Source: Macrostomum lignano (taxonomy: Eukaryota). From it: DNA of 64,000 nt. The stretch is from contig NIVC01002822.1 of the NCBI GenBank assembly GCA_002269645.1, positions 62,001 through 126,000 of the forward strand, read 5' to 3'. The translations under genes were made by a program, and so were the position numbers. The notes beneath the pieces were generated by a model. It did not search any database. It was given only the letters and a program-made list of their open reading frames with translations, and was not told where the DNA came from. How positions within the stretch are numbered: position 1 is the first letter of the stretch; every line of letters begins with the position of its first letter. Below are positions 8,709-59,600 of the stretch, one piece after another.

Positions 8709-11700
8709 GTGAGTTTCTGAATGCGGCGCCCTCCCGTTAGTAATCTCACTGCCTTCTTCCAGACTCCACTGACTCATTGCAGAGCCCCATCCTGACACCT
8801 GACTCATTTTATAGCCCCATCCTGACACCTGACTCATTTTAAAGTTCCATCCTGAGACCTGACTCATTTTAGGGTTTCATCCTGAGATCTGACTCATTTT
8901 ATAGCTCCATCCTAAAACCTGACTCATTTTAAGCTCCATTCTGAGACCTGACTCATTTTATAGCCCCATTCTGAGACCTGACTCATTTTATAGCCCCATC
9001 CTGAGACCTGACTCATTTTATAGCTCCATTCTGACACCTGACTCATTTTATAGCTTCATCCTGAGACCTGACTCATTTTAGGGTTTCATCCTGAGACCTG
9101 ACTCATTTTGAAGCTCCATTCTGAGACCTGACTCATTTTAGAGCTCCATTCTGACACCTGACTCATTTTGAAGCTTCATTCTGACATCTGACCAATTTTT
9201 ATAGCCCCATTCTGAAATCTGACCAATTTTTATAGCCCCATTCTGAAATCTGACCAATTTTTATAGCCCCATTCTGACATCTGACTCATTTTTAGCTCCA
9301 TCCTGAGACCTGATTGTCATTCTGACTTCTACAAGAACACCCTAACACAAAAAATCTCACAAATTTGCCCCACCCAAAGAGCTGCACGAGCTGGGCGCCA
9401 GTGTGCAGGACTGCCAGCAGCCCCTGGAGCTGCTCCAGGACCCCGGCCTGTTTACCCGAGCTCTGGTGGCGGCCGTGCTGGGCAAAGTGTCCGCCCTGAG
9501 CGACTCAATGAACTCCGGGGTGCTCAAAGGCCGCCAGCCGCCAGCGCTGCAGGTGAACTCGCAGCATCCGCTGGTCCGCGACGGTCTCGTTGAAGTCGAT
9601 GAAGCTCGGAGCAGCGTCGGGTTGATCCGTCTGCGGGTGCGGGCAGTGACCAACAGGACGGGCGGGCTGTGCGCGGTGTGCGGCCAGACAGTCAGCAGCT
9701 TTGGCTACTCGATGGTCAAGAAGACGGCATTGAGAATTCGCAGTGAGTGGCTAGGGATTTGGGGATCTAGAGGTGGGATTTGAGGATCTAGAGATTGGAT
9801 TTGAGGATCTAGAGGTTGGATTTGAGGATCTAGAGGTTGGATTTGAGGATCTAGAGGTGGGATTTGAGGATCTAGAGGTTGGATTTGAGGATCGAGAGGT
9901 TGGATTTGAGGATCTAGAGGTTGGATTTGAGGATCTAGAGGTTGGATTTGAGGATCTAGAGGTTGGATTTGAGGATCTAGAGGTTGGATTTGAGGATCTA
10001 GAGGTGGGATTTGAGGATCTAGAGGAGGGATTTGAGGATCTAGAGGAGGGATTTGAGGATCTAGAGGTGGGATTTGAGGATCTAGAGGTGGGATTTGAGG
10101 ATTTAGAGGATGGATTTGAGGATCTAGAGGAGGGATTTGAGGATCTAGAGGTGGGATTTGAGGATCTAGAGGTGGGATTTGAGGATCTAGAGGTTGGATT
10201 TGAGGATCTAGAGGTTGGATTTCAGGATCTAGAGGTTGAATTTCAGGATCTAGAAGTGGGATTTCAGGATCTAGAAAGTGGATTTGAGGATCTAGAGGTG
10301 GGATTTCAGAATCTAGAGGTGGGATTTCAGGATCTAGAAGTGGCATTTCAGGATCTAGGGGTGGGATTTCAGGATCAAGAGGTTAGAGATCTTAAGATAG
10401 GATTTGCGGATTTTGAAATGGGATCTTGAAATGGGATTTGAGGATTTGGGGAACTTAGAGATGGGAGGAGAGGAAGACACCAGTTTTATCTCCCTCTGCA
10501 GAGCCGCCAGTGGCCTCCCTGTCATTCGTGTCCCTGCGGAGTCCAGCAGCCGCCCTGCACTCGGAGACCCGCGATGCAGCCGGAGCTCGGAGGCTGGAGC
10601 TGCAGAGCGGCGCCCTTCCGGGCTGGCTGCACTGCGATGGGGTGGCCGAGCAGCTGACTGCCGTGCGGCTGTTCAAGGATGATAAGGTGAGCGGAGGCTG
10701 TGAGGTGACCGGGACGGATGGGGAGTGGCGGGTAGAAAGAGGCTATGGGGACAGGAGACGGTGAGAGATGCAGAGATAAAGAGGAAGACACGGGGATGAA
10801 GGGAGAGAGACGCGAAGATGAAGGGAGAGAGACGCGGAGATGAAGGGAGGGAGACGCGGAGATGAAGGGGGAGAGACGCGGAGATGAAGGGAGAGAGACG
10901 CGGAGATGAAGGGGGAGAGACGCGAAGATGAAGGGAGAGAGATGCAGAGATGCAGAGATAGAGAAGATAAAGAGTTGAGATCCAATTTTCTCCGACCGGG
11001 CTGCTGGTCCCAACAAAGCGGTGGACCCAATCGCATTAATAGTTGGTAATTTTGAGTCAATTAAATTTATTCAGATTGCTTGCAAACCACTGCATCATTG
11101 ATGAGGCTGGAGGAGGAAGCTGGGGAGCCGTGGAAAATCTTTGCTCCGGCTAATATGCTACTCCAGTTCAATTTTATCCCCAATGGAAGCGAATTGATCC
11201 CCATCTAGAAATTGATTCTCAGACGTTCAGTCGCTGCTGGGGTGTCGGTTTGCTATGGAGTTGAGTTTTCTTGATGCGCTTCTCCAGCTGAGAGTTGCGC
11301 TTCACTTTTGAATCTTGCGTGAGCTGCTGAGGCAGCTGCTTGCGGCCTGGGTTGGCTGAGGTCACCTGGGGTCACTGGGATTCACGGTGTGAGATTATCC
11401 TCTCATAATTGAAAACCAAGAGAATTAAAAGAGAGGAAAAGACAGATAGACAGATAGACAGACAGACAGATAGACAGACAGACAGACAGACAGACAGACA
11501 GACAGACAGACAGACAGACAGACAGACAGACAGACAGACAGACAGACAGACAGACAGACAGACAGACAGACAGACAGACAGACAGACAGACAGACAGACA
11601 GACAGACAGACAGACAGACAGACAGACAGACAGACATTCTGACAGACAGACAGACAGACAGACAGACAGACAGACAGACAGACAGACAGACAGACAGACA

Positions 11701-56600: not shown

Positions 56601-59600
56601 AACGATTCTCACATTGGATTTGGAGCGATTTTTACAGAGGATTTTAGGCGATTCTCACAGTGAATTTGGGACGATTCTCACAGTGGATTTGAGACGATTC
56701 TCACAGTTGTTTTGAGACGATTCTCACAGTGGATTTGGAACGATTCTCACTGTGAATTTGAGACGATTCTGACAGTGGATTTGAGACGATTCTCACAGTG
56801 GATTTGAGACGATTCTCACAGTTGTTTTGAAACGATTCTCACATTGGATTTGGAGCGATTTTTACAGAGGATTTTAGGCGATTCTCACAGTGAATTTGGG
56901 ACGATTCTCACAGTGGATTTGAGACGATTCTCACAGTGGATTTGGAGCGATTTTTAGAGGATTTCAGGCGATTCTCACAGTGGATTTGAGACGATTCTCA
57001 CAGTGGATTTGGGGGCGATTCTCACAGTGGATTTGAAACGATTCTCACAGTGGATTTGAGACGATTCTCACAGTCGATTTAGGGGCGATTCTCAGTGGAT
57101 TTGGAGGCTATTCTCCAAATCCAATTAGTGGATTTGGGATAAACTAATAACATAGCAGTACCAACCTGCCGAGGTGACGTCATCCTCAGCGGGATCGGCG
57201 GCCGAGGCCGCGGTGTCCGCATCGGCGTAGCTGGCGGACCACTTGGCGCTGGACACGGCTGCCAGGACGGCGCCCTTCAGCTTCCGCCTCGAATTGAACT
57301 TCTTCATCTCTTCCACCGTCTCGCTCAGGTGCAGCTTCGGCACCCGGCTGCGCTCGTGGATCCACGGGTGCCGCAGCGCCTCCTCCACCGTCAAGCGTCG
57401 CTGCGGATCGACATCCAGTAGCCGGCTCACCAGGTCCTTCGCCTCTGCCGAGATGTGGTCCCAGACTCGAGGCTTCTTCTGCCAGAGTTCGATTGGCGGG
57501 GTGGCGCTGCTGCCTTAATTAGTGCTCACAATGGGCTCCATCCGGTCATGCAGTGAGTCCTTGTCTAATTCACGGTAATTGTCCGATAGTGTACTACTAC
57601 TACTACTACCACTACTACTACTACCACTACTACTACCACTACTACTACTACCACTACTACTACTACCACTACTACTACCACTACTACTACTACTACTACT
57701 ACTACTACCACTACTACTACTACTACTACTACTACTACTACCACTACTACTACTACCACTACTACTACCACTACTACTACTACTAGCACTACTACTACTA
57801 CCACTACTACTACTACCACTACTACTACTACTAGCACTACTACTACCACTACTACTACTACCACTACTACTACTACTACCACTACTACTACCACTACTAC
57901 TACTACTACTACTACTACTACTACTACTACTACCACTACTACTACTACTACTACTACTACTACCACTAATACTACTACTACCACTACTACTACTACTACC
58001 ACTACTTACTACTACTACTACTGCTGATTGGGGCTGAAGGCTAATCAAATTCTTGCTACCACGAGCCACTATAAGCAGAGGACAGCCACTCACCCGATAC
58101 CGGCCGCTGAGAATCTGCCTGAACAGCACATCCTTGGTGCCGTAGAAGGGCAGCGAGCCGGTCAACAGGATGTACAGCAGGACTCCGCAGCCCCAGGCGT
58201 CCACCGGCTTGCCGTAGGCCTCCCGCCGAATGACTTCGGGCGCCATGAAGTGCGGCGTGCCGATGCGGCCTTTGAATCGCGAGCGGAACGGATGGCACGG
58301 TGCGGTGAAATGCTTCTATTATAAATTTCTACTGTATATAAATAGTTATCTATAAACTATTAATGCGGTTAAATCCTACAGACACGAGAGCTGTTTTTGA
58401 AGCGAATCCAGGCACTATTAACCAGCTCAAGTCTAGTTCAAATCGGTCAAGTTTAGGATTTTTTAAATTTGACTAGCGAGCGGCGCCTTTTAAATTATAA
58501 CAAAACTGAGCCATGCAAAATAAATTTAAAACAAAAAAACTGAAGCTCACACAAGCAGTTAAAATTCTGGTCTACTGTAATATTATCTCTGTGTATCACT
58601 ACTCACTATTAAAAGCAGTCAGTAGTGTGGCAACGCAGCGTTTAAAGGAAATTGAAGATTAACACCGGATTAAATAACCAAAGAACAAATTGGGGGGTCA
58701 AATAAGATTATAAGCCAACGCTTCCAATGCGCTTATTAGATAATCCGCCATAGCCAGCCGGTTATTGCTGTTAGGCTAAGTATAATAATTAACCGAGAAT
58801 AAAATTATGAAAACATGAAATGAGAAATCAGAATTAAGAACAAAAGCTGTAAGGCATAGCAGCAGCACACGGCAAAGCTCAAGTCCTCAAACCCATTGTC
58901 CACATCAGTTATCACACACACACACAGCACCGTGTTGTTTAGTTAAAATGTTGTGCAGCTTCTTACCCAGCTGGTCATCTCTCAGGCTCACAAAGATTTC
59001 CTGCTCTACTTTAACTGGAGTGTCTGCAATAAGCGCGCGGTGCGGGCAGAGGGGAGAGGCAGGTTGGCAAGCACAATTATCAGGTCTTATTGAATTCTTC
59101 TTCAAAATTTTCAAAGTATCTTCTATCATCTAGATTCTGTGAAGGAAAGACAAGAGTTGGAGAATTGGGAAGCAGGTGAGATAAGAGATTAAGAATCTGG
59201 GAGACACGTGAGATGAGAGACTAAGAACCGGGAGGCAAGTAAGATTAAAGACTGAGAATCGGGGAGACAGGTTGGATGAGAGACTGAGAATCGGAAAGAC
59301 AGGTGAGATGAGAGACTGAGAATCGGGGAGACAGGTGAGATGAGAGACTGACAATCGAAGAGACAGGTGAGATGAGACACTGAGAATCGGGGAGACAGGT
59401 GAGATGAGACACTGAGAATCGGGGAGACATGTGAGATAAGACACTGAGAATCGGGAGGCAGGTAAAACGAAACCCGAGTGCAGAATGTGCGGCAGTAACA
59501 CAACTCAGCATAACTCAGCGTACTGCCAGTGCTGACGGTCCAGCTAGATACTGTAAAAATTTAAAGTACAAGCAGCAAAAGCAATAAAATAGCGGAAGTG

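Follow-up and report, generated by a model that had tools for sequence, protein, structure and literature searches.

Human hypervariable minisatellites are said to share a core, as Jeffreys et al. reportedly found in 1985, and this core was later linked to the 13-mer hotspot motif of PRDM9. Satellite DNA evolution is described by a 'library' model, in which families undergo concerted evolution and variants at array edges are amplified. Here we analyze a 64-kb stretch of DNA (the window, by which we always mean the whole stretch) that contains a CASK gene on its minus strand and many tandem arrays, some of which share the octamer TGAGRATC (R stands for A or G; hereafter, the core) while the rest of their units differs. 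We find that the core is shared above chance. At a probability of roughly one half, the sharing is explained by lineage-specific, reticulate descent of the arrays, with TGAGRATC as the most widely inherited block and not as the site of an enzyme.

Minisatellites inside genes have been described in amphioxus, where the introns of Adh3 and the globin genes hold unstable arrays termed 'mirages' with units of tens of bases (PMC3087553); a shared core is not mentioned in that report. In the flatworm Macrostomum lignano, simple and tandem repeats make up 15% of the genome, and the mean intron length is 1.1 to 1.4 kb (Wudarski et al. 2017, PMC5730564). Our literature searches returned no match for the motif strings or for flatworm intronic minisatellites, and nothing was found in the M. 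lignano subgenome paper.

Results

An octamer core is shared by otherwise different arrays

Tandem Repeats Finder (TRF) reports ~50 tandem arrays, which cover 49% of the 64 kb. About 40 of them are minisatellites, the periods of which range from 11 to 47 bp and thus agree with units of about 10 to 60 bp that recur at multiple sites. The spacers between arrays are 300 to 800 bp long and, in an all-against-all BLAST comparison, unique save for one duplicated flank pair. About a quarter of the arrays carry TGAGRATC. The motif occurs 241 times in the window against 10.7 expected, and 237 of these matches lie inside 11 arrays, the number given by an earlier analysis that had only the letters to go by (the sequence-only reading). 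TRF recovered all of the arrays listed there, each with its motif (Table 1), and the near match listed at 13890 is present in array H. Unique DNA is not enriched for the motif, with 4 solitary matches against 2.5 expected, one of them exonic. By family, the core lies on the plus strand in seven cases and on the minus strand in two, a bias that is not significant; within CASK, six arrays carry it antisense to the gene and one carries it in sense orientation. Read in array order, A-type cores (L, M and O, then L2, i and j) and G-type cores (X, b, X2 and h) form physical runs.

Table 1. Positions in the window of core-bearing arrays and of the other features discussed in the text
Feature	Start	End	Strand	Description
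SINE-like element	4270	4520	-	tRNA-like head, B-box GGTTCGATTCTCG, conserved-looking central domain
Array E	9754	10383	+	21-mer ×30, GGGATTTGAGGATCTAGAGGT, G-type core, 21 exact cores
Array H	13889	14373	-	47/95-mer, near match AGAGAATC (1 mismatch)
Array L	21511	24862	+	31-mer ×108, largest array, A-type core, 59 cores
Array M	26868	27102	-	12-mer ×20, core on minus strand, 15 cores
Array O and adjacent array O2	30675	31263	+	O, 22-mer CATGAGAATAATGGTCACTACC; O2, 32-mer with exact core
CASK gene	38439	63103	-	Kinase, L27, PDZ, SH3 and guanylate-kinase exons; GT-AG introns
Direct repeat (16 bp), left copy	41875	41890	+	ATGCGCAGATGGGCGA, brackets array X
Array X	41933	42389	+	28-mer ×16, G-type core, exact in 16 of 16 units, in a CASK intron
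Direct repeat (16 bp), right copy	42426	42441	+	ATGCGCAGATGGGCGA, brackets array X
Array b	45908	46749	+	Composite 16/33/49-mer; core variant TGAGGATC in 43% of units
Array X2	51973	52260	+	28-mer ×10, 6 cores, sibling of X
Unique flank right of X2	52348	52505	+	Copied at 53291-53452, right of h (162 bp, 91% identity)
Array h	52595	53290	+	30-mer ×23; core in 34% of units; majority variant TGGGGATC
Array L2	53766	55114	+	31-mer ×43, 37 cores, sibling of L 30 kb away
Array i	55703	57115	-	23-mer ×61, 51 cores; minus is the CASK sense strand
Array j	59160	59463	+	32-mer ×9.5, A-type core, 6 cores

The sequence-only reading had estimated that a random unit holds the motif with a chance of about 0.15%, and this arithmetic is correct. 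TGAGRATC had, however, been chosen post hoc, and we corrected for this choice by a blind ranking, by a maximum statistic, and by merging families into superfamilies with a Markov null. In the blind ranking of 8-mers over 39 collapsed families, TGAGAATC comes first (5 families) and TGAGGATC second (4 families). The maximum statistic, taken over all 8-mers with one degenerate transition position, is 7 families, and its highest value in 1000 unit shuffles is 5. If up to one mismatch is allowed, 10 of the 39 families match the core, a count to which the null gets in 1 of 300 trials. For the most conservative test, siblings were merged, leaving 37 superfamilies, and a second-order Markov null was trained on the units. 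The core is then found in 6 superfamilies (E, L, M/O, X/h, i and j), a number that the null attains five times in 1000 trials. With array b, where the core is a variant found in 43% of units, the count would rise to seven. Within the window, the core exceeds both shuffled and Markov nulls after family collapse. We conclude that core sharing is significant at p of roughly 0.005 after conservative correction, which is significant but not extreme. Of the at least eight unrelated families that had been proposed, six or seven independent superfamilies remain, whereas L/L2, X/X2/h and M/O/O2 turned out to be siblings.

It is very improbable that chance or compositional bias, aided by the post hoc choice of the motif, accounts for this pattern. 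With one mismatch, GA-rich seeds do spread as widely (TCTCTCCC matches 10 families), and the most conservative test yields a p value of only ~0.005. However, both versions of the motif top the blind ranking, three different nulls are exceeded, and the contrast with 44 array families of M. lignano (see below) is significant.

Array families arise by duplication, edge-unit amplification and block sharing

We compared the consensus units of all families by circular, two-strand alignment. Eighteen family pairs reach a score of at least 24, compared with 0.8 expected. Besides the core-bearing sibling sets L/L2, X/X2/h and M/O/O2, we find the sets Q/S/I/Z, T/a/j, H/J, Y/b, V/m and C/d/f, which we present as sets without the core. 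Within the first group, X and X2 score 108 and L and L2 score 80; in both cases the same family is found at places 10 to 30 kb apart, with no homology between the flanks. The unique flank on the right of X2 has a copy on the right of h (Table 1), which shows that X2 and h, each with its flank, are the products of a local tandem duplication. The 30-mer of h corresponds to a degenerate terminal unit that is still present, unexpanded, at the right edge of X2. A new family has therefore been born here by amplification of an edge unit, with the core retained. Judged from the sequences, O2 is O with an insertion after the core; the two remain similar when the core is removed (p = 0.02), and the exact core is present in only some of their units. 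The M unit TGAGAATCAGCA is found as a subunit within array O, with matches at 14 of 20 flank positions. GA-rich array N (27101-27676) directly abuts array M.

Array X is bracketed by a 16-bp direct repeat, the two copies of which enclose a 535-bp segment consisting of the array together with ~55 bp and ~35 bp of unique sequence. These interior flanks have no match elsewhere in the window. The repeat looks like the target-site duplication of an inserted array cassette. Given this bracketing of X, and given that neither L and L2 nor X and X2 share flanks, arrays can thus insert as cassettes. Target-site duplications are not a general feature of the arrays, however, as X is the sole array with a flanking direct repeat; the longest cross-array match is 13 bp.

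Short blocks are shared between arrays. Array b has ATCCGTGAA in common with array Y (42760), and array j has GAGACAGGTG in common with arrays T and a. Around the core, j and X match at 12 of 20 flank positions. Overall, 12 superfamily pairs share an exact 10-mer, compared with 1.3 expected, and none of these is a pair of two core-bearing superfamilies. Throughout the locus, short blocks are thus passed on between arrays with little else in common.

Other groups of arrays have a block of at least 9 to 10 nt, and no further similarity, in common: ATGAGCAAT / ATGACCAAT in arrays I, I2, Q, S and Z (17572, 18175, 32646, 36869 and 43728), ACCTGTCT in T, a and j (38664, 44679 and 59160), CCATTGGAAC in V and m (39540 and 63642), and GGGGTTGGCCA in H and J (13889 and 18928).

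The core is not uniformly conserved within units

We ranked the position of the core by conservation among all positions of the unit. It ranks 25th of 31 in L, 20th of 28 in X2, 11th of 21 in E and 10th of 31 in L2, and comes first only in i (1st of 23), j and X. In array L, 45 units contain TGAGAATC and 39 contain TGAGAATG, the latter amounting to ~40% of the units. Array b contains GGGGATC, which is the majority form, and AGGGATC as its other variants. A constraint on the core in each unit was rejected on these grounds, namely the inconsistent ranks, the share of TGAGAATG in L, and the minority status of the core in h and b.

These data also bear on a possible function of the core as a cis-element, bound by a DNA or RNA factor, with the arrays being kept as enhancers, insulators or splicing regulators. 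The location of arrays in the introns of a conserved neuronal scaffold gene and the top rank of the core in i, j and X would be in line with such a role. We nevertheless consider it improbable: the core is among the least conserved parts of the unit in L and of middling to low rank in E, X2 and L2, most units of h and b have another variant in its place, and it is missing from the orthologous introns of M. lignano. With six CASK arrays carrying the core in antisense and one in sense orientation, a role at the RNA level is unlikely, and the searched literature has no record of the motif strings.

The consensus unit of array i contains an inverted repeat, TGAGA-CGAT-TCTCA, in which a degenerate second copy of the core faces the exact one, and array I (17572) has a looser form of the same inverted repeat. 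Array i begins ~40 nt downstream of a 5' splice site.

Counterpart loci in M. lignano have the same introns, other arrays and no core

We next compare the window with three M. lignano loci, taken as its sister-species counterparts. The nearest proteins to the window CASK are M. lignano CASK paralogues, with 63 to 80% sequence identity, from which we took the window to stem from a Macrostomum-like flatworm other than M. lignano. One locus (L001, 20.6 kb) holds the homologue of a neighboring gene, the second (L002, 67 kb, NIVC01002087.1) the N-terminal half of CASK, and the third (L003, 78 kb, NIVC01000059.1) a full-length CASK homeologue. The intron positions of CASK in the window match those of M. 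lignano exon for exon, and the M. lignano introns are packed with arrays in the same way. No array family is orthologous between the window and M. lignano CASK, and the window intron that contains arrays k and j corresponds to an array-free intron of 263 bp in L002. TGAGRATC is absent from all 44 M. lignano array families (166 kb; Fisher p = 0.007 to 0.0006 against the window), and is found once each in L002 and L003, outside the arrays. An alternative core was not detected in M. lignano, where the top 8-mer occurs in 3 families, as is typical of the null.

The single occurrences of TGAGRATC in L002 and L003 are fewer than in shuffles of these array-rich sequences (1 against 7.7 and 1 against 9.6 expected, respectively), a deficit that may lack meaning. 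A shorter core conserved in both species, GAATC, was considered and rejected: 8 of 37 window superfamilies contain it against 1.8 expected, but M. lignano shows no enrichment (3 of 33, with 1.3 expected).

The two M. lignano CASK loci contain the same families in the same order, at very different copy numbers. The 23-mer starting with TCTTCTCTGCC is present in 25 copies in L002 and 142 in L003, the unit starting with ATGAGTCTAAATCGGGG in 150 and 36 copies, and that starting with TAGGTCTTCAGC in 14 and 122; at least one large array of L002 (44862-47076) is not seen in L003. As L002 and L003 have their families in common and the window shares none with them, families persist in the short term while copy numbers fluctuate, and are completely replaced between these species.

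A second block, the palindrome GGCGCC / TTGGCGCC(AA), also given as GGCGCC / TTGGCGCCAA, is found in arrays of both species, and had been noted in the window before the M. lignano loci were examined. It is present at 7559-8050, 47723-48001 and 49939-50364 in the window, at 22233-22923, 23237-23822 and 47979-50280 in L002, and at 26634-26853 and 48195-49441 in L003. In the window, 3 of 37 superfamilies contain the block, where 0.15 would be expected; for M. lignano, the count is 2 of 33 families, against an expectation of 0.09 (p = 0.005). Unlike TGAGRATC, the block is thus replicated across species. Window array f and M. lignano array m23237, which lie in non-orthologous introns, have an exact 13-mer, ATTTTGGCGCCAA, in common. 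We take the block to resemble the E2F site TTTGGCGCCAAA.

Origin of the shared core

We favor the following course of descent. The window represents an array-saturated gene region of a Macrostomum-like flatworm, the introns of which keep their splice signals and otherwise consist mostly of minisatellite. Arrays would turn over quickly, with new families coming from existing arrays by three routes seen in the window: degenerate edge units may be amplified, units may be remodelled by insertions and deletions, and an array may be duplicated with its flank or be inserted as a cassette elsewhere in the locus. In each case, short blocks of the old units would be passed on to the new family while the rest of the unit is replaced. 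This scheme draws on the sibling relations, the duplication, the edge-unit amplification and the general sharing of blocks seen in the window, and on the core being absent from the sister species. It also lends direct, if partial, support to the common ancestral element, the only one of the three explanations in the sequence-only reading to receive any: some arrays are linked by local duplication, edge amplification and insertion, whereas most superfamilies share nothing but the core.

Several observations weigh against such a descent. Most core-bearing superfamilies are dissimilar outside the core, and we can therefore only infer that the six or seven superfamilies that have just the core in common go back to one core-bearing ancestor. 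When the core is removed, 4 of 45 testable pairs keep their similarity (L-L2, X-h, O-O2 and, marginally, E-j). Ungapped alignment of the flanks around the core gives a mean of 4.7 matches in 20 positions, compared with 5.0 in the null. The survival of an exact 8-mer in every superfamily while 15 to 25 nt of the unit are erased is not expected from neutral decay without bias. In addition, the core unites more families (6 or 7) by a shorter block (8 to 9 nt) than is seen in the other block-sharing groups, where 2 to 4 families have 10 nt or more in common. Finally, arrays L, L2, X, X2, i and j have their left edge in or at a core-like sequence and their right edge 2 to 11 nt past a core; these edge phases are predicted by budding from array edges and by motif seeding alike, and represent weak evidence.

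The same core-masked alignments and anchored flanks led us to reject a single diverged satellite as the source of the core-bearing arrays. Their units do not align end to end; had they done so, this would have spoken against the sequence-only reading.

Alternatively, a lineage-specific process may make or amplify tandem duplications beside pre-existing TGAGRATC motifs, each array then consisting of the core and of neighboring unique sequence. The agent could be a nick or double-strand break made at specific sites, or else a hotspot-specifying protein that binds DNA and evolves fast. Seeding of this kind would account for a sharply bounded 8-mer in six or seven superfamilies with otherwise unrelated units and for the many arrays that start at core-like sequence and stop shortly past the core, and a fast-evolving specificity is compatible with the absence of the core from M. 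lignano. We still regard it as unlikely. Solitary motifs are not enriched in unique DNA, and the 44 M. lignano families have no core of their own despite an equal intron architecture. Other short blocks are shared in the same manner, so that a non-specific process suffices, and the births that can be seen (h from the edge of X2, O2 from O) represent remodelling rather than de novo formation. The strand bias of 7 to 2 is not significant, and the orientation of the core relative to transcription is mixed. That a nick, a break or a fast-evolving protein recognizing TGAGRATC repeatedly seeds arrays appears quite unlikely to us; the core would then be its footprint and would parallel, in an invertebrate, the connection of the human core with PRDM9. 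The low conservation rank of the core in L, the largest array (25th of 31), also counts against an enzyme or a hotspot-binding protein.

We also considered sequences from which the core could have been derived, namely the B-box of a short interspersed element (SINE), an array-carrying transposable element, or duplicated 5' splice sites; a source of this type is highly improbable. The SINE-like element, which ARAGORN and Rfam do not report, does contain GAGAATCGAACC at 4433, with 7 of the 8 core bases, as the sequence-only reading had pointed out. Its suggestion that the core stems from this B-box did not hold up: when units were aligned to 4270-4520 and compared with shuffles, no core-bearing unit aligned beyond chance, and 1 of 42 units reached p < 0.02 (S, which lacks the core). 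For transposable elements, the direct repeat around X resembles a target-site duplication, but it flanks this one array only, and the unique spacers reveal no common element body. Consequently, a shared element around the arrays was rejected (spacer BLAST gave one related pair only), and so were arrays borne by a miniature inverted-repeat transposable element (MITE), a Helitron or the like, given spacers that are unique bar one flank and a direct repeat at X only. As for splice sites, the local 5' consensus GTGAG does contain TGAG at its positions +2 to +5. Within CASK, however, the core is mostly in antisense orientation, and the arrays leave out splice sites and exon sequence.

Gene context and other features of the window

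The exons of CASK are located in the spacers from 38.4 to 63.1 kb and encode a CASK-type MAGUK with the C-terminal end WVPVNWVY, and the arrays from 38664 to 62989 lie within its introns. From the array and exon coordinates, 13 of the 14 CASK introns in the window contain at least one array. Arrays account for 27 to 94% of the length of these introns and leave ~10 to 100 nt free beside each splice site; they contain neither exon sequence nor splice sites. Sequence between 8 and 35 kb is probably part of a putative second gene, on the plus strand, and arrays E, L, M and O are probably intronic as well. A signal-peptide-like exon is located near 8.5 kb in this region, and a Pfam search of the candidate plus-strand exons from 8 to 35 kb gave a sub-threshold fn3 match at 34186-34518 only.

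A secreted-protein gene at 575-1592 on the minus strand matches Laminin_G_3 / ConA-like domains only weakly and short of the cut-off (E = 0.0025), and its product shares 65% identity with M. lignano BOX15_Mlig033890g1. It comprises two overlapping open reading frames in different frames, which implies a short intron or a frameshift near 1330-1380. The M. lignano homologue of this gene does not adjoin CASK. No tRNAs or known RNA families were detected in the window using ARAGORN and Rfam. The tetranucleotide microsatellite (AGAC)n is found four times, in both orientations (11440-11843, 15237-15637, 16444-17269 and 48340-48607), and (TCTG)n / (CAGA)n occupies comparable places in the M. lignano CASK locus.

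Discussion

Even if the core is only inherited, the locus provides a clear natural record of the birth, movement and replacement of minisatellite families. Conserved introns in which all arrays differ, and homeologues that differ in copy number only, together form a time series of intragenic array turnover. Such turnover within genes goes some way towards explaining the difficulty of assembling these genomes. If, on the other hand, the core marked a sequence-specific process, this would be the first such case outside vertebrates, and the question of what starts a minisatellite would become testable in a laboratory flatworm.

Among the described systems, the amphioxus mirages are intragenic like the arrays of the window, yet they duplicate exon-intron boundaries (PMC3087553), whereas the arrays analyzed here lie 10 to 100 nt inside the introns and have no unit that spans such a boundary. 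The introns of the M. lignano CASK loci are packed with arrays, and the genome report for that species (PMC5730564) is silent on intron-filling minisatellites, on their turnover and on a shared motif.

The human core minisatellites resemble the window in that a short core recurs in many arrays, the units of which are 10 to 50 bp long and otherwise vary in length and sequence. Here too, a core is common to otherwise differing units above chance (p ~0.005), with similarity mostly gone once the core is masked. TGAGRATC is, however, a different sequence in a different phylum, neither G-rich nor chi-like, and our arrays are packed into the introns of one locus, whereas the human ones are subtelomeric or dispersed. 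Also, conservation within the units of the window does not generally peak at the core, and M. lignano lacks any core.

Satellite libraries share with the window the coexistence of related families, the amplification of variant units, edge units that escape homogenization, and quick changes in copy number. They differ in that the window contains dozens of small intronic arrays within 60 kb rather than megabase blocks of heterochromatin, and in that most of its core-sharing families no longer align beyond 8 bp. The birth of h from an edge unit of X2 fits the library model, and the core-bearing arrays are most likely a core-sharing minisatellite superfamily made by array turnover.

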